42,462 nucleotides of DNA from Octopus bimaculoides (Eukaryota). The stretch is taken from positions 15,678,962-15,721,423 of the forward strand of contig NC_069008.1 in assembly GCF_001194135.2 (NCBI RefSeq). Reading direction: 5' to 3'. The notes under the pieces were generated by a model that was not told the DNA's origin, made no database searches, and saw nothing but the letters and a program-made list of their open reading frames with translations. Below are positions 6,385 to 42,130 of the stretch, one piece after another (position 1 is the stretch's first letter; each line of letters begins with the position of its first letter). The position numbers and the translations under genes were made by a program.

Positions 6385-6700
6385 AAATACCTTATTTTAG
6401 AATTCATGTAGACGAGGCGTCCAGCATGTGGTCCCGTCTGATTCCTACATGTTCGACAACTTTAGCCAATCAATCGTTAATGGCCCAGTGCTAGGTAAAG
6501 GTCTTGTTAGTTTTATTTCGCTCTAAATTCTTGAATTCTGGTTCCAGTCTTTCCAAGTTTCCACCTTGTTTCTTGTCACCTTTTAACACTCTTTAATCAT
6601 TAGTCATAAAACGTCAGTTCTTCGTACACAATCAATGATGTCACTTCCTCTTTGTCAGTATCACGTGTTACTAAATCTAGAAACATCGAGTTGTTTCCCT
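6385..6700 (-). promoter_or_regulatory. Conserved upstream cassette (putative promoter/exon 1) of ZNF A
   Basis: Reverse complement of GGGAAACAACTC..GAGGAAGTGACATCA (CACTTCC at 6642-6648), homologous to the cassette upstream of every paralog; internally shortened. Confidence 0.6.
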
Positions 6701-6783
6701 TTTTACTATTTCGAAATATTAGAAGTGTTTCTTTTAATTGTCGATAACATTTGTAATATGGTGATTTTTGTTGGAATGCGAAG

Positions 6784-6927
6784 CGCTAGTGTAGCTAGAG
6801 TGTGTGCCACCCGGGGAGACCCTTCCGTTTGCCGTCCCCAGACCCCACAAAAAAACACATATTGCCTAAAAATGGTACCCCATTAAAGGTACCGTCACTA
6901 CAGTCCCTCCCATCAGCTACGTTAGTG
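6784..6927. mobile_element. hAT-like MITE, 144 bp
   Basis: Termini CGCTAGTGTAGCT / AGCTACGTTAGTG; exact 8-bp TSD ATGCGAAG. Confidence 0.8.
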
Positions 6928-7994
6928 ATGCGAAGAGGACAAAATTAAATGACAGACAGGAGGAGACTCGCCCCAAACGGAAAGCCCGTGCTATGTCTTA
7001 ACCTGTATAAATTGTTTCTGGTTTAGATATGAGGACGGCAAAATTTCAGGAGAGTGGTGTTCTATAGAGCCTTCAATCCCACCATTAAATTGGTACGACC
7101 CCCAACCTAGGTGAGATGAATGGCAAAGCTGACCTCGGCTTCATTTGAAAAGTAAACAGTTGCAACAAATAAGCACAAGGCATTTTTCCAACGCTCCTTC
7201 CCTTCTCAAGGTATATAAATAACTACATGAATAATACATATTAATACATAATAGTAAGTACATATACATACATATATGTACATACATCTATTTTCAGTAT
7301 GTTGGAGAAGCAACTCAATGCTAATCCCTGTATATTTATGATGATAAATGGTTTTACCGATAAAGGTTTTTTCATACTGAACTACTTGGCAAAATTGTTA
7401 ATTATTAATTCTATTATTAATTGACGATTCCCTGCCCTTATTCTTGTATATGTATATATATAGGTAAGCATATGTGGGCACAGGACGACAAGAAACATGT
7501 ACAACAAAAGGTACGAAGTATACGAACGTACATGAAATATGAACTATTTTTTTTAGCATATATATATATATATACAATTATTTACTTGTGATGTTAAAAT
7601 AAATCAATCATTTCCAGAAATAGACATTAAGCAATTTCACCAGTTGTTGGTTGTCAATATTTCATTTCTTCTTTCTGAAGCAAATGATGGTTCTTTATGT
7701 TTACACAATATATTTTCCCCTAGAACACTGAGAAAGTTACAGATTGGGCCACGAACAAGCATCAACTACTTTGAAAATACAAAAATAAAAAAAAGTGAAA
7801 TATAGACAAACAACAACTGGTCAATGTGTTTATAGGATTTATTAATTATGACTTCTGCCCAACATAGAAATAGTGGTTTCAACAGTTTCAGGTCAAAATA
7901 TTGCAAAACAAATTCAAAATCTGCAAGAATTTGCTTTTATTAAAAATATTAGAGGTATCTCAACAATGTACATATAGTTGTAGTGATATTCAAG

Positions 7995-8283
7995 CAAGGG
8001 TGTTGCCAGTGCCGCTGGACTGGCTCCTGTGCAGGTGACACATAAAAACACCATTTGAGCGTGGCCATTGCCAGTGCCGCCTGACTGGCCCTCATGCCGG
8101 TGGCACGTAAAAGCACCCACTACACTCTCGGAGTGGTTGGCGTTAAGAAGGGCATCCAGCTGTAGAAACTCTGCCAGATCAGATTTGAGCCTGGTGCAGC
8201 CATCTGGCTCACCAGTCCCCAGTCAAACCGTCCAACCCATGCTAGCATGGAAAGCGGATGCTAAACGATGATGATGATGATGT
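7995..8283 (+). mobile_element. RTE 3'-end-derived element with (GAT)n tail
   Basis: Shares GGCGTTA(G/A)GAAGGGCATCCAGCTGTAGAAACTCTGCC...CCAACCCATGCTAGCATGGAAAGCGG with the 34303 LINE 3' UTR. Confidence 0.85.
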
Positions 8284-8577
8284 TGGAAGGCTGTTATCAC
8301 ACACTGCTGTATCTCCATTCCTCTGTAATACATTTAGTTATTGATGACTATTTGTATTTTGTCTTTCAGAGGAAATTTGACAGTAAACCATATCCCCCAA
8401 AGCAGTAAGAGGCAACTGAAGGGGTTGGTGTCAGGGAATTTCCACCAACTGTAAATGACAGCCTAAGAAGGGAGCCACAATGAGTGGATTACTTATTGCA
8501 GTGGCTAAAACACACAGGGCAACCCAAACTTTAGGAGTTTTAAATGGTTGTTGTCATGACTTTTTTTATTGATATAG

Positions 8578-9555
8578 TTACACTACTTTATGAATTCGTA
8601 TATGTGTATTTAAGTTGCTATTCCGAGAGAATGATTTACCACAGATATCACACAAATATGGCTTCTCTCCTGTATGAATAAGTTTATGTTTAATCAATGA
8701 ACTATTTACAGAGAATGATTTACCACAAATATCACAATGATAAGGCTTCTCTCCTGTATGAATACGTTTGTGTCTAGTTAACACACTACTTCCAGAAAAT
8801 GATTTACCACAGATATCACAGGTAAATGGATCCTCAATTGTATGAATACGTTTGTGTTTAGTTAAGACAGAAGCTTGAGAGAATGATTTACCACAAATAT
8901 CACACCGATATGGTTTCTTTCCTGTATGAATACATTTGTGTTTATCAAAAAGACTACTAACTGAGAATGACTTCCTACAAATACCACAGTGAAAGGGCTT
9001 GTTCCCTGTATGAATATATTTGTGTTTAGTTAAGGCAAAACTTTGAGAGAATGATTTACCACAGATATCACACTGAAATGGCTTCTCTCCTGTATGAATA
9101 CGTTTGTGTGTAGTTAAGTCATTACTTGCAGAGAATGATTTACCACAGAAATCACAGACATATGGCTTCTCTCCTGTGTGAATACGTACATGTATTGTTA
9201 AGTTACTGCTAAGAGAGAAAGATTTACCACATGTTTCACAGTGATATGGCTTCTCTCCTGTATGAATACGTATGTGTGTAATCAGGTTAGCTTTTCGAGA
9301 GAATGACTTCTGGCAGAAATCACAATGAAATGGCTTCTCTCCTGTATGAATACATTTGTGAGAAGTTAGATCAATCTGAGAGAATGATTTACCACAGACA
9401 TCACTGCAATATGGCCTCTCTCCTGTAGGTATACGTTGGTGCATAGTTAGGTTACATTTTTGAGAGAATGACTTTTGACAGATCTCACAATCATATGATA
9501 ATTTCCTTCTCTCTTCAGGAAAAATCAATTCCTCGAGTTTCTCATTTATTTCCAT
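8578..9555 (-). CDS. C2H2 zinc-finger protein, paralog B (11 fingers, first two degenerate)
   Basis: 11 finger repeats. Finger 1 has the last H changed to P (HQRIP); finger 2 has C changed to S plus a 1-residue deletion. ATG at 9555. Confidence 0.9.
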   Translation of the reverse strand: MEINEKLEELIFPEERRKLSYDCEICQKSFSQKCNLTMHQRIPTGERPYCSDVCGKSFSQIDLTSHKCIHTGEKPFHCDFCQKSFSRKANLITHIRIHTGEKPYHCETCGKSFSLSSNLTIHVRIHTGEKPYVCDFCGKSFSASNDLTTHKRIHTGEKPFQCDICGKSFSQSFALTKHKYIHTGNKPFHCGICRKSFSVSSLFDKHKCIHTGKKPYRCDICGKSFSQASVLTKHKRIHTIEDPFTCDICGKSFSGSSVLTRHKRIHTGEKPYHCDICGKSFSVNSSLIKHKLIHTGEKPYLCDICGKSFSRNSNLNTHIRIHKVV

Positions 9556-10056
9556 AGTATTTCTTCTCAAATCACCATATACATTTCTTGTTTTTGATCT
9601 TGCAGCTTACTTCTTATGGATATTTCTAACTGCTACATTCATGTTCTGTGTTACTCTTGTCTAACAATGCTTTTGTACATTTATATCTCCGTAGGATTAA
9701 TCCAGATTCATCTTGTGAACATAGCAACCAGTGATGTACTGAAATATTGCTAATAACCTCAGAACAAATATTCTACCACAGATTTACTGAATCAGTTTTA
9801 TGTGTGTGCTGTGTATAGGATATTCGTTTGGTCTTTAAATAACGATAAATACTGAGAATGTATCGTCTGTTATGCCAATGTCATCTGATATCCTGAAATA
9901 ATAAAGAAACAACAGTGTAAGTTATAGAGGCTACTTAGAAAATACAGATTCAACAGTGGAAAATTTGGAACATTTCTATAGAGATAAACTGTAGAAATAG
10001 TCATTTAACTGAACTTTTTAATTTATTAAAATTTACATCACAGAATCTTGTGTCAC

Positions 10057-11468: not shown

Positions 11469-12048
11469 TATGTTATATTTTATAAGCATAAGACATGTCT
11501 ATTTTTATTAGACATTTAAGGATTCCACGCGTGTAGTGTAAATAATATGGTCCAGATGGACTATATGTAATCTGAACCTTTCCCCCCTTATTTTTTTTTG
11601 TTTTTTTTACGGAGTCCCACGTTTTAGGCCATGGAGATTCTGATTCTGAAAAACAATTTTCAAAAATCTCAATTTCAAAATTTCGATCCCCCCCCCGGTT
11701 TTTNNNNNNNNNNNNNNNNNNNNNNNNNNNNNNNNNNNNNNNNNNNNNNNNNNNNNNNNNNNNNNNNNNNNNNNNNNNNNNNNNNNNNNNNNNNNNNNNN
11801 NNNNNNNNNNNNNNNNNNNNNNNNNNNNNNNNNNNNNNNNNNNNNNNNNNNNNNNNNNNNNNNNNNNNNNNNNNNNNNNNNNNNNNNNNNNNNNNNNNNN
11901 NNNNNNNNNNNNNNNNNNNNNNNNNNNNNNNNNNNNNNNNNNNNNNNNNNNNNNNNNNNNNNNNNNNNNNNNNNNNNNNNNNNNNNNNNNNNNNNNNNNN
12001 NNNNNNNNNNNNNNNNNNNNNNNNNNNNNNNNNNNNNNNNNNNNNNNN

Positions 12049-12278
12049 GTCCTTCACAATTTGTCTTCAATCGTCTTCCTCTTCACCGTAATTCCTTCGT
12101 CAATTATTATATAAATTGGACAATATTATTCAGTTTAGGGATCAGAAATGAAATGCAATTAAACAGCAACAAGATACTTACTAGCGCTCTTTAGTGATTA
12201 GAGGTCAATTCCTTGTATACAATTAAAAATATCACTTCCTTTTTGTCATTACATCTAAAAACATGGAGTTGTTTCCCT
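12049..12278 (-). promoter_or_regulatory. Conserved upstream cassette of ZNF B (3' part lost in gap)
   Basis: Reverse complements of GGAAGTGA (CACTTCC at 12233-12239), GATCCCTAA and AAGGAATTACGGT present; oriented with gene B. Confidence 0.6.
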
Positions 12279-12302
12279 TTTGACCATGTAAAAATATTCT
12301 TT

Positions 12303-13449: not shown

Positions 13450-15060
13450 NNNNNNNNNNNNNNNNNNNNNNNNNNNNNNNNNNNNNNNNNNNNNNNNNNN
13501 NNNNNNNNNNNNNNNNNNNNNNNNNNNNNNNNNNNNNNNNNNNNNNNNNNNNNNNNNNNNNNNNNNNNNNNNNNNNNNNNNNNNNNNNNNNNNNNNNNNN
13601 NNNNNNNNNNNNNNNNNNNNNNNNNNNNNNNNNNNNNNNNNNNNNNNNNNNNNNNNNNNNNNNNNNNNNNNNNNNNNNNNNNNNNNNNNNNNNNNNNNNN
13701 NNNNNNNNNNNNNNNNNNNNNNNNNNNNNNNNNNNNNNNNNNNNNNNNNNNNNNNNNNNNNNNNNNNNNNNNNNNNNNNNNNNNNNNNNNNNNNNNNNNN
13801 NNNNNNNNNNNNNNNNNNNNNNNNNNNNNNNNNNNNNNNNNNNNNNNNNNNNNNNNNNNNNNNNNNNNNNNNNNNNNNNNNNNNNNNNNNNNNNNNNNNN
13901 NNNNNNNNNNNAATCAGATTCCTCTTGTGTCCATAACAAATTTTCTGAAGAAATTGAAGCCTAGACTGTTTCCCTGCTTACTAAAACTTTGGTCTTTGCT
14001 TCATAAACTCTAACATTATTGAGTTGAAGTTTTGCTTCCTTTTATATCCTTGTATGATGGATATATAATTTAACGAAACAATGAGGAAGAAACGACACAC
14101 TGCTATTACACGAGAGCCAACGCTTTCAATCACGCCTCACAGTGAACTGCTTACCAACCTGAACTGCTAATCGCTCACATTGTTTTGTTTTATAACAATG
14201 AGTCAGTCTACCTTTAGTCACTCGGTGGATGGTCGGAATCCTTCCACAACATCTTCCCTTTTTTAGAATCAGATTCCTCTTGTGTCCATAACAAATTTTC
14301 TGAAGAAATTGAAGCCTAGACTGTTTCCCTGCTTACTAAAACTTTGGTCTTTGCTTCATAAACTATAGCATCTTTGAGTTCAAGTTTTGCTTTCTTTTAT
14401 ATCCTTGTATGTTGGATATATAATTTGACAAAGCAGTGAGGAAGTCTACTTTCACCATTAGCCTTCCTGAGATGCCACAACAGCTTTTGTTGGGTGTCAA
14501 TGTATAATTCCTTTTTCCTAAGCAATTCATATAGTTTTTATGTCCCAATAATATATTTTCTTTGAAAACATTGATAGAGTTGTACATTTGCGTCACAACT
14601 ACTTTGAAATTAGAACAAAATTCAAATTAAATAATGACAAACTACAACTGGTGAAAGTGTTTATAGACTTTATTAATTACGATCCCACCCAAATATGATA
14701 TTGGTTTGAAAATCTCACCAATGAAGATAGAGTTGTGGTGATATAAAATATAGTGTTATGAAGTTGTTAGCACATAATGTTGTATTTTCATTCCTGTGTG
14801 AATACATTTACAGTTACAAATGCATACATTTGTTTTTCATACATTTTTTCAGAGGAATTTTCACAGCAAACATTATGCTTCAATCTTGTAAGGGGTAACT
14901 AAAGGAGTCAGTGTCAGGGAAGGTCCACCAACTGTAATAACAGCCAAAGGAAGTGAGCCACAATGAGTGGATTAGTTATTGCTGTTGCTAACACTTACAA
15001 GGTAACCCCTAGTTTAGATGAAGCTTAAAATGTTTGTTATAAATTTTAATGTCAATGCAG

Positions 15061-15990
<930 letters not shown>

Positions 15991-16240
15991 CTAATCAATG
16001 CTTTTGTAAATTCATCATCATTGACGTAACCCAAATGCATTTTGTAGACATTCCAGACAGTTATGTAAAGAAATATTGCAAAGAATCTCAGGTCAGATCA
16101 AATATTTCATAGGAATTCTACCACAGATTTCTGGAAACAGTTTTATACAACATCTGATCTGTACAACATTTTCTCTTAGTCTTCAAAAGATGATCAATAT
16201 TGGGAATAAATCTTCAGTTATTCTAATGTCATTTGATATT

Positions 16241-16342
16241 CTGAAATAATAAAGAAACAACAGTGTAAGATATAGAGGATACCATAAAAATACAGATTCA
16301 AAAGTGGAAAATTTACTACATTTCTATGGAGATAAACTTTAC
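16241..16342 (-). other. Putative short 5'-UTR intron of ZNF C
   Basis: CAG|GTAAA donor and TTTATTATTTCAG| acceptor; 102 nt. Confidence 0.6.
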
Positions 16343-17503
16343 CTGAACAAATGCATTTTTTAATTTATCAAAATTTACATCACAGAATCTTATGTGAAGC
16401 TTGCATATTTGTAAACTTCACTGAGACCCGCACATTGTGTAAAAGTATTCAGATTAATGCTTTTTATGCTTTTCAGATCACATCAGAAGGATTTAAGATA
16501 TTCATTGTTAATTTTGAGGCTAGTTGATTGACATTTCATTAAAACCTTATGACATTTGTCAAGAGGTACCCCTAACTAAATAATGAATAATTTCCAAAGG
16601 TTCTGAAATTAAGATTCATTGAAAATATAGTAAAATATCCAGGGAAAATAAACCACCCCGAGATGGTTCTAATTGTAGAGAAAACTCTGAGTCCCAGCCC
16701 CTATACATACATTGAACTAAAATATGAATAATAACTGTTTGTTTTCAAGATCAGATTCATTGATAATACATGAAAAAGTGAAATTATAAAGAAAATAGGA
16801 AAACTCCGAAGGTTCCCCACTCCCTCCACCATCAAAGGTCATTTCTAGCATGCCTGAATGTCAAATTCATTGAAAAAAACTCTGACAAAATTTATCCTCA
16901 ACCAAATGAACGAGGGGTGTAGATCTACAAAATTCCAAAGGCCTTTGTAACCTCATATTTTTTTTTTTTTCAAAGCTAGTTATTACCAACTGGTTTGCAG
17001 TTAATATTTGTTGATAGCATACAAAAAAAAATGAGGAAAATGGAAAAGAAAGCTTGGGGGCTGGGGGAATTCCCCTCTCTGCCTCTGTTTTCAGGACATG
17101 CTCAATGGTCAGATCTGTTGACTGCACAAAAAAAAACAAAAAAAAAAAAACATTTCCAGCTGAAATTGAGACAGGTGTTTGTCTTTAAATTTACCTTCAT
17201 CGTTTATTTCTCCTCCACTTTCTTCGAAGTTTTACACATACACATTCTCCTTACATCTCGTTGCTAACAAAGACTGATGTTTTTTCCTTTCCGATGTCAC
17301 CAATATTTTAGTCATAAAATGAAAATTGCTATTGGTATAATGATGAATATTTATTGCATTTTTGACTTTGAGAAGAAACAGATTTTTTACAGATATTCAC
17401 TACCTTACAAAAACTACATCAGCTAAGCAAATGGCCTTCTCTAAATGCATTTAAAACATATTCAGAACACTATTCCAGAAAATTAGTTCAGTTACCCTTA
17501 GAG

Positions 17504-17797: not shown

Positions 17798-18809
17798 CCT
17801 TAGAGCATACAGAAGACAAAGTTAGGTGGAGTAAAATGAGTAAGGCAAGATAAAGTAAATTTTGCTTTTTCAATTCTCCAGAATTACGTTTGAAAACAGA
17901 CTCATACACCTCGATATCTATCCGAAAGATCGGAAATGCCACAAAAAAAATTAATATCCAGGAAAGTGGCATATGTTATGAAATTAACGAAACTCCACTA
18001 AATAAAAAAAAAAAATCAATACAAAATATCCTCGATATTTTCTTCACGATCCGATGGAGTGGCTCTGCTCTCGATATAACGTAGCTGAACAGAAGAAGAA
18101 ATTACTGAAACTGGTCGTTATTCATTTCACCGCATTTTAGACATCCCTCATTGAAAATTGAAAAATGATCAAATTAAGCATTAACGTGGGGGGAAAAAAT
18201 TGACTTGGAATCGAACAGAGAAAAGAGTATTTGATTGTTAAACACTAAAAATTATCACAATATTTTATTAACAACCTCAATTAAAATCGGGTTCAGATTC
18301 GATGAAAAACTGCTTGAAAACAAAAAAGTACCTCTCACCTGACTATGAACCAAAATCTCTCAACCTTTAGCAACGACTATGCTGACGAATTTTTACTCTT
18401 AAACATGATGCAATGATTCCGAACAAGTAGGAAGAAAGTAACACAAAATCATAAATTACTCATTTTGCCCCACCACATCCTATTTATATTTTTGCGATAG
18501 TCGCTCGTGTCAGAAAACGACTGCTCTGCAATCTCTTGCAGGACGGCCTGCACAAATATTTCGCTTATAATAGTCAAATGTTTGTGCTGCACACTAGCTC
18601 ACCCCCTCCGTCAAATTGACATCCACCTTTACAGGTGCACGGCGTGATCGCAGAGCAACGCGCTCGCGAATGTTTGTAGACGTTCAGGGATTCCGCGTAA
18701 GAGTAAACAACACTTTATGAGACAAAGTGGGAGCCTGTAAATTAATTAGCAAGACTAAGTAAACCGACATAGTTATCCTTTTATAATATATATGATAAAC
18801 AATAAAACA

Positions 18810-19220
18810 TCTTACTTTAGAATTTTCTTAGATATTTAGTGAGTCCAATCAACTGATCAATGAAATCAATCATCGATGTCGCAGGTCTTCTTGTGTTTCT
18901 CACTAAATTCTTCAATTCCGTTTCCAATCTTTGTCCAATCTCTCCACTCTCTTTCTTGTCTCGTCTTTTTTTACTCTCCCTCACAATCTGTCTCATCCTA
19001 TCGTCCACCTCCTTTTCACTGATCCCCTCCACCGTAATTCCTTTATCAATTATTATACAACTACGACAATATTATTTTAGTTTAGGGATCAGGAACGAGA
19101 GAAGAAAACAACTATGAAAGGAAACGAATAGCACTCTCTCGTGATTTGACTTCATATTCAATCAATGATGTCACTTCCTTTTCAGCATTATCACTTGTCA
19201 CTAAATGGAGTTATTTCCCT
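18810..19220 (-). promoter_or_regulatory. Conserved upstream cassette of ZNF C
   Basis: CACTTCC at 19172-19178, ATTGG boxes, donor-like AAA|GTAAGA at 18815 on the minus strand. Confidence 0.65.
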
Positions 19221-19249
19221 TTTTACAATTTCAAAATATTTATTTTAAA

Positions 19250-19620: not shown

Positions 19621-19759
19621 NNNNNNNNNNNNNNNNNNNNNNNNNNNNNNNNNNNNNNNNNNNNNNNNNNNNNNNNNNNNNNNNNNNNNNNNNNNNNNNN
19701 NNNNNNNNNNNNNNNNNNNNNNNNNNNNNNGACACAAACCCCCATTTTCGGCAAAGGGG

Positions 19760-19932: not shown

Positions 19933-19984
19933 TGAAGTTTACTAAGAAAAGGACAAACCACTATTAATATTTTGAAATAGTAAA

Positions 19985-20445
19985 AAAGGGAAACAACTCT
20001 ATATTTCTAGATTTAGTGATGATACCAAAGAGGAAGTGACATCATTGTATACGAAGAACTGAACTCTAAGCACGAGAGAGTGCTATTCATTCCCATTTAT
20101 AACTTGTCTTCTATTCCTTCTTGATCCCTAATCTGAATATTATTGTTTTAAAGGAATTACGGTGAAGAGGACCAGTGAGAAAGAGGTGGACGATAGAATG
20201 AGACAGATTGTGAAGGACAACAAAAAGAATAAATTTGGAGAGATTGGACATAGATTGGAAAGAGAATTTAGAATGAAATTCAAGAAAGTTTAGACAGCTG
20301 TGGAACATTAATGATTGATTTCATTGATCGGCTAAATTTATCGATGTGTATGTAAACAACGACCTCTAGTACAAAACAGACGGGATCACATAGAAACAAC
20401 ATGCTAGACTCCCTAAATTAGTCTACATAAATTTTAAAGTAAGGT
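19985..20445 (+). promoter_or_regulatory. Conserved upstream cassette of ZNF D
   Basis: GGAAGTG at 20032-20038, GATTGG repeats, donor-like AAA|GTAAGG at 20439. Confidence 0.65.
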
Positions 20446-21300
20446 ATTTTATTGTCTATTATATATTATAAAAAGGTAATTATGTAAGGTTAATTAGGCT
20501 TACTAACCACAGGCTCCTCATTATCTCATAAAGTATTATTTACACTACTCATGTGGAATCCTTGAATAACTACGAAAATTCTAAGGTGTGCTGTTTTATG
20601 TCTATAAAATGTACTGTAAAACCGTATTTAGCTCAATTTAATTAATCTTCGTAAAATGATGGTTTATTTGTAAATTAGAGGAACGTGACTTGTCGCGTCT
20701 ATGAATCGCTTCTGTTTTGGACATAACTACAATTTGGTGTCATGCCCTCGACTTTGTTTCCTCATAACTTTCTTCACAAAGCACCATATTTTAAAATAAC
20801 ATTTTGTAAAAATACATTCTTGTGTCTGTGTATTATGTAAAGAGTTTCGGAATGGCACGCCCACTTAAGTTGAATTTTCTCCGTTTTCACGGGGATTTTT
20901 CAAATTTTGTTTTCTCCACGCCCTTGGAAATGATGGATTGGAGGGAAGCTTGTTAAAAAAATTAATTTTTGAAAAATTCTTCTGCTCCCCACAAAGAATA
21001 ATGGCACATTTTCTTTAAATTTCACCTTTCAATCTTAAAACTGACAGACTATGTACTAAATTCACAATGCAAGAGGCATAGACGGGATGTTCATCAATGG
21101 AATGTCAAGCTCAGCTGGAGCTAAACAACAATGTCAAATTATTTTTCATTAGAGAGAAGAATGTTATTGTCTTCTATTCTGCAGTTTAATCTAAATAATA
21201 TTACACAATGTGAAGATGTAGCTGTAGTTTACAAATATGTAAGTTACACACAAGATTCTGTGATGTGAATTTTAATACATTGAAAAGTTCAGTTGTTCAG

Positions 21301-21411
21301 GTAAATGTTTATTTCTAAAGTTTATCTCCTTAGAATTATTCTAAATTTTCCACTCTGTATTTTCTAAGTGGCCCCTCTATAACTTACACTGTTGTTTCTT
21401 TATTATTTCAG
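21301..21411 (+). other. Putative short 5'-UTR intron of ZNF D
   Basis: GTTCAG|GTAAAT ... TTTCTTTATTATTTCAG|; 111 nt. Confidence 0.65.
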
Positions 21412-24424: not shown

Positions 24425-24444
24425 AATAACTCGACTTACGAAGA

Positions 24445-26336: not shown

Positions 26337-26424
26337 AATACCAAATGGCATTGACGTAACAGAAGATACATTCTCAATATTTATCATCCTTTGAAGATCC
26401 AGGGAATACAGAACAAATGTATGA

Positions 26425-27500
<1,076 letters not shown>

Positions 27501-28265
27501 CTGCATCCATGTTAAAATTCATAAATATTTTAAGCTTCACCTAAACTGGGGGTTGCCCGGTGTGTTTTAGTCACAGCAATAACTAATCCACTTGTGGATC
27601 ACTTCTTTTGGCCGTCATTTACAGCCTCCCAATATTATATTTTATCTCTCCTCAACTATATCTACATTAGTGAGATATTGAAACAAATATTGTTATGTTT
27701 TGGTGGAGTCATAATTAATAAAATCTATAAACACACTGGCCAGTTGTAGTTTGTCTATATTTCATATCATTTTTTAAATTCTGTTTTGAAAACACTTGTG
27801 ACCCAATCTACAGTTATTCAATGCAAGTTATGGACACAAGAGGAATCTGATTCTAAAAAAGGGAAGATGTTGTGGAAGGATTCCGACCATCCACCGAGTG
27901 ACTAAAGGTAGACTGACTCATTGTTATAAAACAAAACAATGTGAGCGATTAGCAGTTCAGGTTGGTAAGCAGTTCACTGTGAGGCGTGATTGAAAGCGTT
28001 GGCTCTCGTGTAATAGCAGTGTGTCGTTTCTTCCTCATTGTTTCGTTAAATTATATATCCATCATACAAGGATATAAAAGGAAGCAAAACTTCAACTCAA
28101 TGATGTTAGAGTTTATGAAGCAAAGACCAAAGTTTTAATAAGCAGGGAAACNNNNNNNNNNNNNNNNNNNNNNNNNNNNNNNNNNNNNNNNNNNNNNNNN
28201 NNNNNNNNNNNNNNNNNNNNNNNNNNNNNNNNNNNNNNNNNNNNNNNNNNNNNNNNNNNNNNNNN

Positions 28266-28660
28266 NTAATGGAGAAAGACTGTATGTGGCAGATGTCCAG
28301 AAGCAGTAACCTCGAAGAACATGCAAGAAATAGATTTTCTTGAATACCCAGGAAGTTCAGTACAGGTTGTACATAGTTTCTGCTACCTGTGTCCCCTAAT
28401 TAGCAGTGGAAAGGGATGTTCTGAAAGTATGGTCGCTAGAATATGTTTAGGATGTAGAAAGTTCAGAGAAGTATTAACCCTGTTGGCAACAAAACATCTC
28501 TTTTTTTTTTCAAATTGAGCAGGAGATTGTATGATGCTTGTGTACATACTTCAATGCAGCATGGTAGTGAGACATGTGGTGTGAATGTAGTGTAGTTGGG
28601 ATGTCAGGAATGGAACAAAGCTTGTATGCTCCATTAGATGTGCAACATCAGTTTGTGAAC
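28266..28660 (+). mobile_element. Decayed RTE LINE internal fragment
   Basis: QVVHSFCYLCPLISSGKGCSESMVARICLGCRKFREVL, the same RTE motif. Confidence 0.72.
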
Positions 28661-29412: not shown

Positions 29413-29424
29413 AAAGTAGAGAAA

Positions 29425-29830
29425 GAAGGGAAATAACTCGATGTTTCTAGATTTCGTGTTCAAGTAATAATGACAAAGCGGAAGTGATATGATTGATTCT
29501 ATACAAAGAACTGGCCTCTAATCACTAGAGAGTGCTATTAAGTCTCCTGTCGGTGACCGTGGGGTCTCTTTCCATTTCACCTCCAATCCTTAAACTGTTT
29601 AATATTGTCTTATTTATACAATAGTTGACAAAGGGGTTACGGTGGAGACGACCGGTTAGAAGGAAGTGGACGCTAGGACGAGACAGATTGTGAGGAAGAA
29701 CAAAGAGATGAGAGGCTGAAAACGAAATACAGGAATTTAGAGTGGAATCCTAGAAGACCTTTCCCCAGCACTGAACATTAATGATTGATTTCATTGATCC
29801 ATTGATTGGACTAAATTCTCAGGTAAGGTA
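29425..29830 (+). promoter_or_regulatory. Conserved upstream cassette of ZNF F
   Basis: GCGGAAGTG (core at 29480-29486); donor CAG|GTAAGG at 29823. Confidence 0.65.
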
Positions 29831-30909
29831 TTCTTGTTCTTTCTGATACGCTATAAAACAATAAAGTCAGGGGACTAATTCAATTTCGCACCTCTCCTTG
29901 AAAAATGCATTTAGATGTCGGAGATTACGAATATGAATAAACAAAAAAAAAAAAAAAAAANNNNNNNNNNNNNNNNNNNNNNNNNNNNNNNNNNNNNNNN
30001 NNNNNNNNNNNNNNNNNNNNNNNNNNNNNNNNNNNNNNNNNNNNNNNNNNNNNNNNNNNNNNNNNNNNNNNNNNNNNNNNNNNNNNNNNNNNNNNNNNNN
30101 NNNNNNNNNNNNNNNNNNNNNNNNNNNNNNNNNNNNNNNNNNNNNNNNNNNNNNNNNNNNNNNNNNNNNNNNNNNNNNNNNNNNNNNNNNNNNNNNNNNN
30201 NNNNNNNNNNNNNNNNNNNNNNNNNNNNNNNNNNNNNNNNNNNNNNNNNNNNNNNNNNNNNNNNNNNNNNNNNNNNNNNNNNNNNNNNNNNNNNNNNNNN
30301 NNNNNNNNNNNNNNNNNNNNNNNNNNNNNNNNNNNNNNNNNNNNNNNNNNNNNNNNNNNNNNNNNNNNNNNNNNNNNNNNNNNNNNNNNNNNNNNNNNNN
30401 NNNNNNNNNNNNNNNNNNNNNNNNNNNNNNNNNNNNNNNNNNNNNNNNNNNNNNNNNNNNNNNNNNNNNNNNNNNNNNNNNNNNNNNNNNNNNNNNNNNN
30501 NNNNNNNNNNNNNNNNNNNNNNNNNNNNNNNNNNNNNNNNNNNNNNNNNNNNNNNNNNNNNNNNNNNNNNNNNNNNNNNNNNNNNNNNNNNNNNNNNNNN
30601 NNNNNNNNNNNNNNNNNNNNNNNNNNNNNNNNNNNNNNNNNNNNNNNNNNNNNNNNNNNNNNNNNNNNNNNNNNNNNNNNNNNNNNNNNNNNNNNNNNNN
30701 NNNNNNNNNNNNNNNNNNNNNNNNNNNNNNNNNNNNNNNNNNNNNNNNNNNNNNNNNNNNNNNNNNNNNNNNNNNNNNNNNNNNNNNNNNNNNNNNNNNN
30801 NNNNNNNNNNNNNNNNNNNNNNNNNNNNNNNNAACATTGATGCTTGTTGACATGTTTCACATAATGTGAAGACAAGAACACACTCCCACACCAAAAGATG
30901 ATAATCTTT

Positions 30910-31058
30910 CAGTTTCTACCTACCAATTCCACTCAGATGGCTTTCATTGAACTGGTGCTTTGGTAGAAGAGACTTGCTGAAGGTGCTGTACTGTGGGACT
31001 GAACCTGAAATCACATGGTTGGGGAATCAAATTTGTTAACCACATAGCTATTCTTGCC
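30910..31058 (-). mobile_element. Diverged SINE S1 fragment
   Basis: Degenerate match to the S1 head (GTGGGACTGAACC, CACATGGTTGG). Confidence 0.6.
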
Positions 31059-31502
31059 AACATCATATCTTTCTCATCCAGTTATGTTTTCTTCATTCAC
31101 CAATGTTTATTTTTGTTTTTGGTTTGTCATAAAAATGGCAGAAACTGCAAAAACAACTTCATTTTGATCTTGGCTATTTAAGTGATCGCATGACATACTA
31201 GAAATAACAGCACATTTCCCTTAAATTACACCTTTCAGTCATAAATATTGAACGTGATGTTTCAAGATGTAGTCCTAAATATACATTGCTAGAGAGAGAC
31301 AGAGAGGATGTTCAAGGATGGAATGTCGTTAATAGTTTGCCTGCACAGTCAAAGCTCAGCCGTAACTAAGCAACAATGTCAAGTTATTTTTCAGTTGGGA
31401 GAAGAATGTTATTGTCCATTATTCTGTAGTTTAATTTATATAAAGTTACACAATGTGATGGTGTAGCTGTAGTTTGCAAATATGCAAGCTACACACAAGA
31501 TA

Positions 31503-32135: not shown

Positions 32136-32189
32136 GGAGCACAGGCCACAGCTACAAATTTTGATAAATTAAAATGTTCAGTTGTTCAG

Positions 32190-32304
32190 GTAAATGTTTA
32201 TTTCTACTGTTTATCTCCTTAGAAGCGTTCTAAATTTCCCATTGTTGAATCTGTATTTGTAAGTAGCTTCTATACCTTACACAGTTGTCTCTTTATTATT
32301 TCAG
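32190..32304 (+). other. Putative short 5'-UTR intron of ZNF F
   Basis: Same donor and acceptor context; 115 nt. Confidence 0.65.
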
Positions 32305-32650
32305 AATACCAACTGACATGGGAATAACAGAAGATACATTCTCAATATTTATCATCCTTTGAAGTCCCAGAAAATGTGTTATGCAGAACAGATGTATAAA
32401 ACTGTTTCTATACATCTGTGGTAGAATTGAATTCCTATGAAATATTTGCTCTGACCTGAGATTATTTGCAGTATTTCTGTACAAAACTGGCTGAAGTGTC
32501 TACGAGATAAATATTATTTAATTCCGCACGATTAAATTGACAAAAGCCAAAGGTAACACTGGCGAGAAATGCAGCAGCAGAAATATTTGTAAAGAGTAAA
32601 CTGCAAGAACAAAACGAAGAAGTATATTTAGTGATTTGAGAAGGAAAATT

Positions 32651-33559
32651 ATGGAAAAAAGTGAGAAATTTGAGCAGTTGATTTTGCCTAAAGACATAAT
32701 AAAAGAGAGCAGAAAATTGTCATATGATTGTGACATCTGTCAAAAGTCTTTCTCTGATAGAGTACAGCTAACTAGGCACATACGTATACATACAGGAGAG
32801 AAGCCATATTGCTGTGATGTCTGTGGTAAATCATTTTCTCAAAGTAGTCACTTAACAATACATGTACGCATTCATACAGGAGAGAAGCCATACGCATGTG
32901 ATATTTGTGGCAAATCATTCTCTGCAAGTAATGACTTAAGTATACACAAGCGTATTCATACAGGAGAGAGGCCATATCACTGTAATATCTGTAGTAAATC
33001 ATTCTCTAAAAATGTTACCTTAACTAGACATGAACGTATTCATACAGGAGAAAAACCGTATCACTGTGATATCTGTGGTAAATCATTCTCTGAAAATGTT
33101 AACTTAGTTACCCATAAACAGATTCATTCAGGAGAGAAGCCATTTCACTGTGATATCTGTGGTAAATTATTTACTAAAAGTTGTAATTTGAATACACACA
33201 GACGTACTCATACAGGAGAGAAACCATATCATTGCGATATCTGTGGTAAATCATTCTCTGCAAATAGTGACAGAACTAGACATGAACGTATTCATTCAGG
33301 AGAGAAGCCATATCACTGTGACATCTGTGGTAAATCGTTCTCTGTAAGTTCTCAAGTCGTTGAACACAAACGTATTCATACAGGAGAGAAGCCATATCAA
33401 TGTGATATTTGTGATAAATCATTCTCTGTAAATACTGCCTTAAGTAAACATAAACGTATTCATACAGGGGAGAAGCCATATTTGTGTGACATCTGTGGTA
33501 AATCATTCTCTTGGGGCAGCAACTTAAATACACATGTACGCACTCATAAAGAAGTGTGA
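32651..33559 (+). CDS. C2H2 zinc-finger protein, paralog F (10 fingers)
   Basis: 10 intact C2H2 repeats; ATG at 32651; ends THKEV*. Confidence 0.95.
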
Positions 33560-35250: not shown

Positions 35251-35251
35251 T

Positions 35252-35452
35252 GCATCACAAAAAGAATGAAATTAATTCAACCACAGTTAATAGTTTGACA
35301 TATATATATATATTAATATATAGTATTAGAGAAAAGAACCAAGGTTTATGAACTCATCAATGAAAATCCACTGTCACATACAGAAAAAATTTATAATTGA
35401 AAGTACAATAAACTATTAACTGTGGTTGAATTAATTTCATTCTTGTGATGCG
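35252..35452. repeat. Element with 42-bp terminal inverted repeats
   Basis: 35252-35296 is the reverse complement of 35411-35452 except for a 3-nt A insertion. Confidence 0.8.
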
Positions 35453-35664
35453 AAGAGAACAATTCTTTTCTACTCTAGGCACAAGGCCCGAAATTTTGGG
35501 GGAGGGGGCCAATCGATTAGATCGACCTCAGTACGCAACTGGTACTTAATATATATTTTATACTGTGAAGCTTAATTTAATTTTAATTTTTAATAAATTG
35601 ATTTTAATTGAGATTTTACCTGTAATTTTGGATTTTATCCCTAATATTATTATTATATATATAT

Positions 35665-36095
35665 AAAAAGGGAAACAATTCCATGTTACTGTAGAAGAGA
35701 GAAGTGATACAAAGAGGAAGTGACTTCATTGATTCTATACAAAGAACTAAACTCTAATCACAAGAGAGTGGAATTGAGTATCCTGTTGATGTTGTTGTTC
35801 AGTCGCTTTCTGTTTCTGATCCCTGGACTGAATAGTATTGTCATATTTATGTAATAATCGACAAAGGAATCACGGTGGAGAGGATCAGTGAGAAGAAGGT
35901 GGACAATAGTAGACAGATTGTGAAGGACAAGGAAAAAAGGTGGAGACATTGGACAAAGATTGGAAATGGAATTCAGGAATTTAGAGTGAAATACAAGAAG
36001 ACCCTTACCCAGCACTGGGACATTAATGATCGATTTCATTGATCGATTGATTGGACTCCCTCCTATATATCTACGTAAATTCTAAAGTAAGATAT
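35665..36095 (+). promoter_or_regulatory. Conserved upstream cassette of ZNF G
   Basis: GGAAGTG at 35716-35722; ATTGG boxes; donor-like AAA|GTAAGA at 36087. Confidence 0.65.
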
Positions 36096-36288
36096 TTTAT
36101 TGTTTATAATATATTATTAAAGGATGTTTATGTCGGTATATTTAGTGTTACTAATTTACAGGCTCCCTCATTGTCTCATAACATATTACGTGGAATTCCT
36201 AAATGTCTGCAAACACCCGTGAGCACTTTGATATCTGAGGTGTGGTACGTTGTGCAACTAGGTGGACGTCAATTTGATGGAATGAACT

Positions 36289-36540
36289 GGCGATCTTTCG
36301 ATACTAGGCCGGAATATCGGCCTTTTCCGTAAAAAGTGTCTTCGGCGATCTTTACCAGAGATCGGCCTTTTCTGTAACACCCGCACGATCTTCACTAGGG
36401 TGTTAGGGTTAGGGTTTTAATGTCAGGGTTAGGGTTTGTTTGCTGCTTACCACTATCTATCTTTCTTAACCCTAACCCTAGTGAAGATCGTGCGGGTTAC
36501 GGAAAAGGCCGGTATTCCGGCCTAGTATCGAAAGATTGCC
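36289..36540. repeat. Foldback (MITE-like) element with internal TTAGGG/CCCTAA repeats
   Basis: Long inverted arms (GATCTTTCGATACTAGGCCGGAATA.CGGCCTTTTCCGTAA and CCCGCACGATCTTCACTAGGG) ending inward in telomere-type repeats. Confidence 0.8.
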
Positions 36541-37486
36541 CATACGAGAAATCTTTCACGAAATACGGTTCTTAGAATTCAGGTATGAGCAGTTATAAAA
36601 ACCCTGATTTGGGGGAAATAAATCAGTGTTCATTGGTTGTCACTTGATTTCATGACACTCACTTGCCTGAGATTTGGTTGTTATGATGCCAAGTCTTTTG
36701 TCTAATTCATAAAGGCTATTTTGAATTGGTGTTTAAAACTTTTTGCAGCCTAGTTATAAATTTTATGTTGTAAACCTCTATGACAGTCTTCTTTTGACTT
36801 GTAAAAATATACGTAAATAAATTTAGTGAATAATTTCTTTTTCTTCATTTTCTTCAACCTGTTTTTGTAACTATTGAAACTGTTTTTAACGCAGAGAAAA
36901 AGGTTGTGCTTATGCATATTCAACATACATGCACGTTCAACGTCTTGGTGTGTGTAAGTCACTACAACGTTTATGTAGTCTGAGCTAGGATTTATGTATG
37001 GTGATAAAATACTTATAATGAAGTTATAAGTGACGGATTTATCACCACAGATTCCTGCTCAAGAAATATTTAATATTTATATTTATTATAATTTCATGTC
37101 GAACACATTATAAATAGATTAAATTATCTAATTGTTATAGATAAATTTCCACTGTAAGTCCGATAGATCTGTCATTTTAATGAATTTTAATTACTTTTTT
37201 CTGATGATATCTGAAAAGAAACAGCAATTTTAGCAAAACATTAAGCAACACTAATAATAAATTTAAAAAAAACGTAAAAATAAACAAGCTTTTGACGGTT
37301 TTATAGATATTTCAAAATTATGATGCTAGGTGTTTCCATTATTTTGTCTAACCCCTGTATGTTATTGTCCGCTAACCTAAATAATATTACACAATGTGAA
37401 AATGTAGCTGTAGTTTACAAACATGTAAGCTACACACAAGATTCTGTGATGCAAATATTAATACATTAAAAAGTCCAGTTGTTCAG

Positions 37487-37598
37487 GTAAATGTTTCTTT
37501 CTAAAGTTATCTCTGAAAAATATTGTAAATTTTCCACCATTGAACAGTACTTTTAAGTAGCCTCTATATCTTATACTGTTGTTTATTTATTATTTCAG
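37487..37598 (+). other. Putative short 5'-UTR intron of ZNF G
   Basis: Same donor and acceptor context; 112 nt. Confidence 0.65.
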
Positions 37599-37869
37599 AA
37601 TATCAAATAAATATGATATAACAGATGATACATTCTCAGTATATATCCTCGTTTGAAGACCAAGGGAATATGTTGTCCAGAACAGATATACAAAAAAAAT
37701 TTCTATAAATCTGTGGTAGAATTCAGTGGAATATTTGCTCTGATCTGAAATTCTTTGAACTGGTTCTGTACATAATTGTCTGGAATGTCTACAAGATGAA
37801 TATGAGTTCATTCAACATGGATAAATTTACCAAAGCATTGATTAGACAAGAAATATTTGTAACGAGTAA

Positions 37870-38745
<876 letters not shown>

Positions 38746-40901
38746 CTGCATCCATGTTAAAATTCATAACAAGCATATTTTAAGCATCATCTAAACTGGG
38801 TGTTGCCCTGTGTGTTTTAGCCATCACAATAACCATTCCACTCATTGTGTCTCTCCTTTTAGGCTGTCATTTACAGCTGGTAGACCTTCTCTGATACAAA
38901 CTCCATTCGTTTTTTTGTTTCAGCATTGAAGGATATGTCAAAATTCATCTAAAGAGGAAAGAAAATAAAAGTGAAAAGCTCTAATGAATAACTTTAAATG
39001 TGTTCTGACAGGAATGGATGTACGGCAGTGTTTGATAACAGATTCTCAACAATATATTTTATATCGCTACAACTCTATCTACATTGATGAGATATTCAAA
39101 CCAATATTGTTATATTTGGGTGGAGTCATGATTAATAAAGTCTATAAACACCCTAATTAGTTATAGTTTGTTTTTATTTCGTTTGAATTTTGTGTTCCAG
39201 TTTCAAAGCAGTCGTTTATCCTATGTACAGCTCTCTCAATGTTTGCAAGGAAAATATTTTGTTGGGACAGAAGCAAACATCAATTGCTGAAGAAATTGAA
39301 GTGAAACATAGACAGCCAACAACCAGTGTGGGTCGTTATAGGCTTTATTCATTATGAATCTTGCCATGTTTAACAATGTTTTTCATATTACTCGTGTATA
39401 ATCCATGTAACACATTTTCAGAAATGGTTTATTTTGACACTGTTTTTCCCATCCTGTTCTTTCCTTTTTCTCCACTAGTCCACCTCTAACATAGTTTTGG
39501 GACGTTCACACTCTACCCTTTCTCTTCTAAGTGTGGTACCCTTCAACATCTACTTTGTGGCCCTTTCTCTGCCTCCTTTTCTTTCATAACCCTCGTCTCT
39601 GCTTTTTCAATACCTCAGCATCTCTTCTCATTTTTCTCCCTCTCATATACCCATAAAACACCCCTATAATTCTCTTTTATTGTTGCTTTCAGCATTCCTC
39701 TTCAACCTAGTTTGTTGCTCCCCTTCTGTCCCCCTTCCCCCACACCTGTGCATCCTTGCTCCTTTTAATGTTGAAGACCCTAGGATCCCTATCACATTTT
39801 CAACATTATTTCTCCCTTTCCTCCATCCTGTCTATAATTCCTTCCCCCCTCTCCTTGTTCCCTATCACGCTCCCCAATCTTTTCCTCGTACGTATCGTTC
39901 CTCATCCTTCTGCTGAGGTTCATCGCTCATTCTCCTTTCATTTCTCCATCAATTATAGGGTCCACTTTTGGACCCTATAACTTACAAGGTTAACATAACT
40001 TGTGATGGTGCCATGCAAAAACACCCACCCTCAACATTATAAAACTTGGTTTGTCTTCTTAAGAATAGCATTCAGATATAGAGACTCCACCAAAGGAAAT
40101 GTTGAAGCAGCAGTCCTCCCACTCCTCTAACATTTTATACCATTCTACCTGTACCAACTTGGAAGCTGGACGTAAATATTCTTTCTACTGTAAGATCAAA
40201 GCCTAAAATTTCTACAATAAGGTGAAGGGGTAGTTGATTGCATCAAACAAAGTGCTCAGATGGTACCTATTTCATCAACCCAAACGTGAAAGGAAGAGTC
40301 GACCATGGTGCACTTTGAACGCAGGATGTAAAGATGTACGAAATGCTGCGAAGCAACGATACTGCTTTTGAACAGAGATAAATAATAATGATACTGAGTG
40401 TGATGAAAGTGGGTCTGGCTCTGCGGAAGTCCTACGGATATTCACTGAGGAGAAAGCAGGATTCAATGTGTTAGAGAAACTCGGTGGAAGTAAAGAATAT
40501 GCACACCACCGTAACCCTAACCTTAAACGCTGGGTGTGCGTACTCTTATCTTCGCCGAAAACTCATAATTTCTATTACTTTAGACGTATTCGAAGTGAGT
40601 CCGACTGGGTGAAGGTTTGCTGGGTTGAAGAGATAGTCTTTCTATGCAATGGGACACATTGAAACGATCTTCCAAACGCCAGGGTATATCCTCGTTGTGA
40701 GTGAGAGATTAATGTTTATTTTCTTAAATCAAATTGTTATCTTGATGCTAATATTTCTCCTTATTAGTTGAAATCCCACCGGCGTCAACTTTGCCTTTCA
40801 TCTTTCCAGGATGGGGATTGAGAAAGTAGAATGCCTGTCTAATGGTGATCAGTGATGTGAAAGTGGGAACGAAGGGTTTAAAGAATGTTACTGTGTCTAT
40901 T

Positions 40902-41289
40902 GGAGGCGCAATGGCCCAGTGGTTAGGGCAGCGGACTCGCGGTCATAGGATCGCGGTTTCGATTCCCAGACCGGGCGTTGTGAGTGTTTATTGAGCGAAA
41001 ACACCTAAAGCTCCACGAGGCTCCGGCAGGGGATGGTGGCGAACCCTGCTGTACTCTTTCACCACAACTTTCTCTTACTCTTACTTCCTGTTTCTGTTGT
41101 GCCTGTAATTCAAAGGGTCAGCCTTGTCACACTGTGTCACGCTGAATATCCCCGAGAACTACGTTAAGGGTACACGTGTCTGTGGAGTGCTCAGCCACTT
41201 GCACGTTAATTTCACGAGCAGGCTGTTCCGTTGATCGGATCAGCTGGAACCCTCGACGTCGTAAGCGACGGCGTGCCAACAACAACAAC
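40902..41289 (+). mobile_element. Full-length tRNA-derived SINE (family S2) with (AAC)n tail
   Basis: A-box TGGCCCAGTGG, B-box GGTTTCGATTCCC, AAC-repeat tail, 12-bp TSD ACTGTGTCTATT. Confidence 0.9.
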
Positions 41290-41315
41290 ACTGTGTCTAT
41301 TATATCCTGCGTTAA

Positions 41316-41515
41316 GTCGGTGAGCTGACAGAAACGTTAGCACGCCGGGCGAAATGCTTAGCGGTATTTCGTTCTGAGTTCAAATTCCTCCGAGGTTGAC
41401 TTTGCTTTCATCCTTTCGGGGTCGATAAATTGAGTACCAGTTACGTAATGGGTCGACCTAACCGACTAGCCCCTTCCTCAAAAATTTCGGTCTTTGTGCC
41501 TAAGGCAGAAACGAT
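41316..41515 (+). mobile_element. SINE family S3 (central GACTTTGC..TTTCATCC..GGGGTCGATAAA domain)
   Basis: tRNA-like head GGTGAGCTG..GAGTTCAAATTCC and a conserved central domain. Partial copies at 28915-29010 (+), 35455-35550 (-), 40765-40830 (+), 40270-40360 (-) and about 7050-7200 (-). Confidence 0.75.
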
Positions 41516-41727
41516 TATACCCTGTGTTGATGCCATCGACTAATCAATCCGATCCAATGAAATTATTCTGTGCTTGTACCTAAATTAGAAGTAATTTAGA
41601 CAGCAAAGGCATGACCCATGCTCTCTGCATAGAGTGAACGTCGTCTGTCGTCTTTTAATTTTGTCCACTTCGCATCCCAACAAGAACTAAATTATTTCAG
41701 CCGCTTCTAATATTTTGAAATACAAAG

Positions 41728-42130
41728 CAGGGAAACAACTCTATGTGTCTAGATTTAGTGACAAGTAATACTGACAAAGAGGAAGTGATATCATTATATT
41801 GTATACCAAGAACTGTAGAGAGTGCTATTCAGTATTCCGTCGGTGTTGTTGTTTAATTGGATTCCAGGCTAGATCCCTAATCTGAATAATATTGTCTTAA
41901 TTATATAATTGACAGAGATGATAGATTGAGACAGAATGAGACATCCTAGGCGATAGAATGAGACAGATTGCGTGAGAGAGTAAAAAAAAGAGTAACGAGA
42001 AACAAGGTGGAAAGATTGGAAGTGGAATTCAGGAATTTAGAGTGGAATCCTAGAAGACCTTTTACCCAGTACTGGGACATTAATGATTGATTTCATTGAT
42101 CCATTGATTGGACTAAATTCTCAGGTAAGG
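41728..42130 (+). promoter_or_regulatory. Conserved upstream cassette of a predicted eighth paralog (H) beyond the window edge
   Basis: GGAAGTG at 41781-41787; donor CAG|GTAAGG at 42125; 3' half nearly identical to the F cassette. Confidence 0.6.

Follow-up and report, generated by a model that had tools for sequence, protein, structure and literature searches.

What does a zinc-finger gene bring with it when it is copied again and again along one chromosome: only its coding sequence, or also an upstream region from which each new copy could be expressed? This question is raised by a stretch of 42,462 nucleotides in the genome of Octopus bimaculoides (RefSeq assembly GCF_001194135.2, contig NC_069008.1, positions 15,678,962 to 15,721,423 of the forward strand), here called the window, on the contig designated C28 below. 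Nine neighbouring zinc-finger (ZNF) genes in and just beyond the window, A to I, each have a homologous non-coding block of ~450-650 bp, 1.3-3 kb upstream, which I refer to as the cassette. Judged from its sequence, the cassette may be the distal first exon or promoter of a lineage-specific ZNF sub-cluster, a reading to which I give an even chance of being right.

The cassette and its genomic distribution

The original prediction, made from the letters of the window, was that eight homologous blocks lie upstream of ZNF exons and in the same orientation as those exons. This is borne out by blastn, in which unit G as the query (35645-36281) matched the seven other cassettes at 69-78% identity, each co-oriented with its downstream ZNF exon, and by a MAFFT alignment, which corroborated the homology. 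Pairwise identity among the eight window copies is 64-86%, and all are co-oriented with their own ZNF exon. The copies are listed here with the positions of an ETS-like core and of a donor-like splice site, both of which are taken up below.

Cassette A: 6372-6705, minus strand; ETS core 6641-6648; decayed, ~140 nt of the middle deleted, donor GT changed to AT
Cassette B, 5' half: 12049-12281 (blastn start 12049/12077), minus strand; ETS core 12232-12239
Cassette C: 18607-19225, minus strand; ETS core 19171-19178; donor-like AAA|GTAAG, last exon base 18816
Cassette D: 19962-20649 (blastn to 20538, merged matches of the sensitive search to 20649), plus strand; ETS core 20032-20039; donor-like site, last exon base 20438
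Cassette E: 24441-24977 (blastn from 24481), plus strand; ETS core 24484-24491; donor last base 24837
Cassette F: 29422-29870 (blastn 29473-29812), plus strand; ETS core 29480-29487; donor CAG|GTAAGG, last base 29822
Cassette G: 35645-36281, plus strand; ETS core 35716-35723; donor last base 36086
Cassette H: 41729-42224, plus strand; ETS core 41781-41788; donor CAG|GTAAGG, last base 42124

Cassette B is interrupted by a gap (11704-12048), beyond which a colinear 3' remnant lies at 11503-11547, and cassette F enters a gap at 29961 after a run of 16 A. When the window was extended by 30 kb on either side, the ZNF exon that gene H had been expected to have beyond the window end was found at 44466-45470 (window-equivalent positions here and below). 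Just past the window, on the minus strand, is a ninth gene, I, with a cassette of its own at ~53645-54287; the count of co-oriented copies is thereby 9/9.

Genes A to I share, in order, the cassette, a second block directly before the coding sequence (the proximal block), the ZNF exon and 300-700 nt of 3' flank. The units are spaced 4.5-7 kb apart and switch strand at C|D and H|I, and the cassette stays 5' of its own gene at both of these junctions, the first head-to-head and the second tail-to-tail (the putative C|D adjacency spans a gap, 19621-19730). Given these ordered homologous blocks with their orientation kept, the unit of copying is the whole gene, by tandem and inverted segmental duplication. 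That tandem ZNF duplicates carry their own 5' region is an ordinary outcome of tandem gene duplication. The cassette is non-coding, with stops in all frames and indels that are not multiples of three. A structured RNA was also considered and rejected: there were 0 Rfam matches at the gathering threshold, and the RNAalifold energy for 546 columns was -12.6 kcal/mol, its covariation term counting against the fold.

The whole 2.34 Gb assembly (145,327 contigs) was searched with the cassette core of G (35664-36140). Only 10 first-look candidates were returned, all of which were scored; nine are the loci of this sub-cluster (C28, 15.685-15.733 Mb), and the tenth is an AT-rich partial match on C5 covering 57 query positions. 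Since all nine copies sit beside ZNF genes of one cluster, the cassette is not a dispersed repeat, the outcome that the original prediction had named as fatal to itself; a repeat or transposable element (TE) with many scattered copies is likewise rejected.

The proximal block is distributed very differently. A search with it had 296 first-look candidates and at least 44 matches, which lie on C28, in clusters at 5.6-5.8, 14.5, 15.0-15.24 and 15.67-15.72 Mb, with the exception of one on an unplaced contig. For 14 family loci from the other clusters, taken with 7 kb of upstream sequence, I was unable to identify a cassette within those 7 kb, or GGAAGTGA, the motif at the centre of the cassette's ETS-like core, in homologous context. 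A diverged cassette was sought in the same loci by a sensitive blastn with all nine cassettes (word size 7), which returned only TE-like flank matches. These 14 members encode the same protein type in intact open reading frames (ORFs) with 6-22 fingers, and loci of one cluster share private upstream sequence among themselves, which includes an insert resembling a short interspersed element (SINE) and no ETS core. The family thus expands and persists without the cassette, and the claim that the cassette travels with every ZNF copy holds locally (8/8, or 9/9 with I) and fails for a family of at least 44 copies.

Outside this species, the named protein match of highest identity is an Octopus vulgaris protein at 61%, and the cassette was not found in its locus with 10 kb flanks. 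The protein collection held no close orthologue, and a homologue search limited to the N-terminus gave no candidate. Exact look-ups of the proteins of G, F and D returned no entry, which has no bearing on whether the genes are expressed.

Motifs within the cassette

The longest invariant run in the cassette is GGAAGTGA, present in 9/9 copies (A-I), in agreement with the prediction of a motif invariant in all eight window copies (8/8). It occurs nine times in the window against 1.23 expected, a count that 0/100 shuffles reach, and 8/9 of these occurrences lie inside cassettes, co-oriented with the gene. Homology between cassettes starts only 45-75 nt upstream of the ETS core, and an upstream AGGGAAAYAAYTC box is present in 8/9 copies, having been lost in I. 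The secondary motifs that had been named are real but less uniform than claimed: exact GAGGAAGTGACATCA is in 3/8 window copies (A, D, E), GGAAGTGACATCA, one mismatch from GGAAGTGACGTCA, in 4/8 (5/9 with gene I), GATCCCTAA in 5/8, and exact AGGAATTACGGT in 4/8 (5/9 with I), the middle part being lost in A with its ~140 nt deletion.

The core had been taken for a canonical ETS-CRE composite (CRE, cyclic AMP response element), and this identification does not survive comparison. The composite of vertebrates reads (C/G)CGGAAGTGACGTCAC and is bound cooperatively by GABPA and CREB1 (PMC3464117, PMC4555227). As in that element, GGAAGT in the cassette overlaps an octamer that starts with TGA(C/T), in the exact composite register. 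Unlike the cassette, the vertebrate element has a full CRE, a central CpG and the flank CCGGAAGT, whereas the CRE half varies from cassette to cassette. On the ETS side, the core GGAAGT is present in 9/9, with the flank GAGGAAGT in A, D, E, G, H and I, AAGGAAGT in B and C, and GCGGAAGT in F only; the 5' flank is (G/A)AGGAAGT, and resembles GCGGAAGT in F only by chance. The canonical ETS half (C/G)CGGAAGT is absent, CCGGAAGT being found in 0/9 copies, and so is the overlapping full CRE GTGACGTCAC, with TGACGTCA in 0/9 copies and the central CpG in none. The CRE-like half reads TGACATCA in 5/9 copies and TGATATCA, TGATATGA, TGATATTT or TGACTTCA in the others. The most parsimonious ancestor of the nine is GACATCA, and an older CpG form of this half is a conjecture. 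To my knowledge, an ETS-CRE composite has not been described in this invertebrate. I take GAGGAAGTGA to resemble generic or class-III-type ETS sites, and TGACATCA is presumably an ATF/Jun-type variant. Evidence that the ETS-like motif is functional is weak.

A reverse NF-Y box (ATTGG) had also been named among the motifs that follow the ETS site; in NF-Y promoters the CCAAT pentamer is placed about 60-100 bp upstream of the start site. Sense-strand ATTGG does occur 1-3 times per cassette against 0.46 expected per 600 nt, a modest and sense-only enrichment in which no single box is conserved in more than 6/8 copies. The boxes follow the ETS core at a distance of ~200-335 nt and precede the donor by ~15-195 nt, so that ETS and NF-Y cannot both hold canonical positions at one start site. 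A shared ETS-CRE/NF-Y regulon, as read from these motifs, goes beyond the evidence. The predicted donor A(A/G)|GTAAG fared better, since a donor-like site of this form is on the sense strand of 7/8 assessable copies (all but A) against a background expectation of 0.10 per 600 nt.

A TATA-like TATATAAT ~150 nt downstream of the ETS core was considered and set aside as not conserved; it is present in only 4/9 copies, degenerate in three and deleted in A and D. Better kept is a direct repeat of three ATTGAT units, TGATTGATTTCATTGATCGATTGA, near-invariant in 8/9 copies at ~290-330 nt after the ETS core (e.g. 36020-36060) and ~25-75 nt upstream of the donor. It is the best-conserved stretch besides the ETS core, and it is the part of the cassette that gives the sole match outside the cluster, on C5. 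I take TGATTGAT to be a PBX/Hox-type site.

Constraint and competing explanations

The cassette forms the distal 5' end of a 4.5-7 kb duplication unit and is private to the sub-cluster A-I. In the first-exon or promoter reading, the founder gene would have had the family-wide proximal leader with its ~110-nt candidate intron, a single finger-array exon and, in addition, the extra upstream block, and tandem and inverted segmental duplication would then have copied the whole founder unit. In each copy the cassette would serve as a compact promoter and non-coding first exon, with a start site at or shortly downstream of the GGAAGTGA core and an untranslated exon of ~340-425 nt that would end at the A(A/G)|GTAAG donor and be spliced into the proximal leader. 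The transcription start, the splicing and any binding of ETS or bZIP proteins are predictions from sequence.

What favours constraint on the cassette is the pattern of its presence and absence, not its substitution rates. The comparison turns on a neighbouring feature of gene F:

30837-31501, plus strand: ancestral upstream stretch of ~650 nt, whole only in F, between cassette and proximal block

Its homology to the upstream region of the ZNF cluster at C28 15.0 Mb shows this stretch to be ancestral. In F it begins directly after an 872-N gap, into which it may extend. About 200-340 nt of it remain in D. It is gone from C, E, G and I, which are fully sequenced, and very probably from A and B as well. 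Because the two genes that retain it, F and D, belong to separate clades of the cassette tree, it must have been lost independently at least twice. The cassette, by comparison, was never lost, being present in 9/9 while the adjoining ancestral stretch is gone from most copies; its core has a single indel of more than 50 nt, shared by A, D and I, and no large TE insertions. Such a pattern would be expected of an exon or promoter with intron and intergenic DNA on either side, and it is suggestive, not decisive. It is mildly interesting that only nine genes, in a family of at least 44 members, have the module, and that its appearance was followed by decay of the ancestral upstream region.

A different set of observations weighs against a promoter or first exon and makes a serious rival, short of an even chance, of the explanation that the cassette is a neutral passenger: non-functional sequence that lay in the founder's unit, with the proximal block as the working promoter, as in the at least 35 other members, and with the 8-mer and the donor as chance survivors. 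Between cassettes the median Kimura two-parameter distance is 0.35-0.37; the cassette thus diverges as fast as or faster than two proxies for neutrality, the four-fold sites of the last 81 codons (0.27) and the proximal block (0.27), while the 3' flank, a third proxy, stands at 0.45. Both values of 0.27 are probably lowered by gene conversion in the coding exon and the proximal block, examples of which are the 99% identical tract of B and D and the identical 3' ends of D and E. In a tree-aware parsimony profile 127/361 cassette columns are invariant, the invariance of the 8-mer GGAAGTGA is marginal (column permutation P=0.049), and no 12-column window is significantly conserved (P=0.18). Single copies have decayed: A lost ~140 nt and the donor GT, D the TATA-like stretch and I the AGGGAAAYAAYTC box. 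The much larger family does without the cassette, the 14 members examined elsewhere keeping their ORFs and fingers intact, and other sub-clusters share private upstream sequence simply through common descent. Finally, the proximal leader (~470-550 nt) is conserved at 80-99% majority per column over 20 copies, candidate intron included, which exceeds the conservation of the cassette, is comparable to that of silent coding sites, and makes this block a serious alternative site for the real promoter or leader. A passenger does not readily explain why the cassette is kept in 9/9 copies next to a stretch lost at least twice, why TE insertions crowd both of its flanks and not its core, or why a sense-strand donor-like site is retained in 7/8. 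In the original prediction the unit of expansion contained a self-contained promoter; that the cassette truly belongs to the duplicated gene unit and shares the orientation of its gene stands, and the promoter claim is overstated in view of the neutral-like rates and the marginal P value.

The remaining explanations have much smaller chances. The cassette could be a distal regulatory element that is not exonic and acts on a start site in the proximal block, whether as an enhancer, as a silencer or by binding ETS, bZIP or homeodomain proteins. I consider this unlikely, in spite of its sharing the retention evidence with the first-exon model and of the conserved short islands GGAAGTGA, GGAATTTAG and TGATTGATTTCATTGATCGATTGA, since orientation is strictly kept, though this is automatic under unit duplication, and overall constraint is weak. 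That the cassette is a fragment of a TE or dispersed repeat merely near ZNF genes is highly improbable; TEs are abundant all around it and its 3' tail beyond the donor (e.g. D 20570-20690) weakly matches scattered sites on other chromosomes, but the scarcity of first-look candidates, all in the cluster except the C5 partial match, largely refutes this for the core. Least credible is an assembly artefact, with mis-joined or duplicated contigs posing as paralogues. The nine gaps in the window, the near-identity to D of the piece right of the gap in E, and the tract shared by B and D speak for it; the cassettes, however, diverge from one another by 14-36%, with different indels and different TEs beside them, and with such divergence and indels they cannot be duplicated reads of one locus.

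To return to the distal promoter or first exon, one could go further and propose promoter turnover: a unique, non-TE sequence was captured once by the founder as a new distal promoter or first exon, gave an ETS/bZIP-like input that the other members (at least 35) lack, and made the ancestral upstream region dispensable, after which most copies lost that region independently. I regard this as tentative and, taken as a whole, rather doubtful. If promoter turnover were general, each cephalopod ZNF burst would be tied to a private 5' module, and this would go some way to account for the spread of paralogues over different expression modules. Should the cassette be a working promoter or first exon, a candidate core of 60-100 bp (the AGGGAAAYAAYTC box and GGAAGTGA) is defined for a species-restricted ZNF sub-cluster, and the sister clusters with the leader and without the cassette offer a natural experiment in the gain or change of regulation by new tandem duplicates; I found no examination of the cis-regulation of cephalopod C2H2 expansions in the literature. 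If it is a passenger, it illustrates how paralogy alone can yield conserved-looking motifs.

Gene structure, neighbours and surroundings

The window has 37% G+C, nine N runs and a CpG observed/expected ratio (o/e) of 0.62. Its ZNF content is seven single-exon poly-C2H2 ORFs, with A, B and C on the minus strand and D, E, F and G on the plus strand:

ZNF coding exon A: 3566-4654, minus strand; paralogue of the G exon
ZNF coding exon B: 8578-9555, minus strand; paralogue of the G exon, degenerate fingers
ZNF coding exon C: 15061-15885, minus strand; paralogue of the G exon
ZNF coding exon D: 21749-22645, plus strand; paralogue of the G exon
ZNF coding exon E: 26476-26880, plus strand; paralogue of the G exon, four fingers
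ZNF coding exon F: 32651-33559, plus strand; paralogue of the G exon
ZNF coding exon G: 37921-38745, plus strand; 274 aa, 9 C2H2 fingers, no N-terminal effector domain

A wider delimitation puts the 5' ends of these exons at 4699 (A), 9606 (B), 15990 (C), 21698 (D), 26425 (E), 32600 (F) and 37870 (G). The encoded proteins have 9-12 fingers after only ~24 residues (MEKSEK..L.LP...), and an effector domain (KRAB, FiNZ) was looked for in the ZNF proteins of the window and not found. The proximal blocks directly precede these exons:

Proximal 5' block A: 4655-5229, minus strand; equivalent of the G block
Proximal 5' block B: 9556-10053, minus strand; equivalent of the G block
Proximal 5' block C: 15886-16456, minus strand; equivalent of the G block
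Proximal 5' block D: 21187-21748, plus strand; equivalent of the G block
Proximal 5' block E: 26164-26475, plus strand; equivalent of the G block
Proximal 5' block F: 32155-32650, plus strand; equivalent of the G block
Proximal 5' block G: 37373-37920, plus strand; small-exon donor last base 37486, candidate 112-nt intron, acceptor first base 37599, ATG 37921

Candidate splice sites in these blocks are a donor TTCAG|GTAAAT and an acceptor TTATTTCAG|RAT; 102-130 nt separate the two in A, C, D, E, F and G, so that the 110-nt intron predicted before the ZNF exon has a plausible counterpart in six copies. In D, E and F the candidate donors of the small exon are at 21300, 26227 and 32189, and the candidate acceptors of the terminal exon at 21412, 26337 and 32305. 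Since the candidate intron is as conserved as its flanks over the 20 copies compared, conservation cannot validate the splice model. Just after the acceptor lies ATGACATTGGCATAA, which resembles a tiny upstream ORF.

Two of the genes show signs of exchange or mis-assembly. Gene E is discontinuous across a gap (26881-27171); the left part is a complete four-finger ORF with an in-frame TAA at 26878-26880, and the sequence to the right (27172-27800) is a 3' ZNF fragment with flank that is 97.5% identical to D 22317-22948. The arrangement reflects a mis-join, a recent conversion, or a relic lying behind a truncated gene. Genes B and D share a 561-nt tract of 99% identity (B 9370-9930, minus strand; D 21374-21934, plus strand) that spans the proximal leader and the start of the coding exon, and their cassettes differ by K ~0.39 and group with different partners. 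The tract points to a recent conversion event between these inverted paralogues, or else to an error of assembly. Two further gaps, at 13450-13911 and 28152-28266, are intergenic.

To the left of the window, gene U3 (minus strand, ZNF exon at window position -3687 to -2311) has a proximal block. An N run of 1298 (C28:15677665-15678961), directly left of the window, takes up most of its upstream region in which a cassette would be expected, and could conceal a tenth copy; no cassette was found in the sequenced remainder of that region (window 1-2991). The sub-cluster is flanked by the ZNF genes U1, U2, J and K (-20159 to -9685 and 55190 to 65682), which belong to other subfamilies with 10-19 fingers and different N-termini, and in which neither the cassette nor the proximal leader was found.

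Clusters of this kind are known from other animals. The KZNF clusters of human chromosome 19 consist of tandemly amplified poly-ZNF genes with shared promoter architecture. For the ZNF genes of zebrafish chromosome 4, the work of Hadzhiev et al., in the form in which PMC10547256 cites it, describes 'sharp-peak' TATA promoters and a shared promoter architecture. Genes A-I resemble both in the local duplication of gene units, in the one-exon finger array and in the homologous 5' non-coding sequence of each copy. They differ in that their proteins have neither KRAB nor FiNZ, in being known here from sequence alone, and in that their distal block is limited to nine genes, the wider family sharing the proximal leader only. 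Large, species-restricted poly-C2H2 expansions in chromosomal clusters, like that of A-I, have been described in cephalopods (PMC9068888, PMC12513265), and C2H2 paralogues of one cephalopod expansion clade are usually in different co-expression modules (PMC12513265). These studies treat proteins, trees and expression modules, and PMC12513265 makes no mention of promoter, upstream, untranslated region (UTR) or exon.

The space between cassette and proximal block is filled by copy-specific repeats. D has a dispersed element of ~140 nt there, and in E a dispersed repeat (24073-24426) adjoins the other side of the cassette and ends 58 nt upstream of the ETS core. In G the insertions are:

36547-37361, plus strand: copy-specific TE insertions between cassette and proximal block of G

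One of them is a SINE-like insertion of ~207 nt (37153-37361), present in copy G only. The genome search returned more than 3,600 first-look candidates for it, and the identity of those scored, 91-95%, is suggestive of recent activity of the family. A second, older element of ~600 nt lies at 36546-37155.

CpG-rich patches (o/e 1.0-1.8) lie at 951-1300, 23851-24250 and 41101-41500, a few hundred bases upstream of some cassettes, and the one upstream of E overlaps the dispersed repeat 24073-24426. CpG islands were rejected as an interpretation, the CpG-rich 200-nt windows (o/e 1.2-1.8) being at inconsistent positions and partly inside TEs. Cassette G is flanked by two inverted-repeat pairs of 93-95% identity that are absent from the other copies (35252-35296 with 35410-35451, and 36289-36332 with 36497-36540) and that look like palindromic insertions of the miniature inverted-repeat transposable element (MITE) type.

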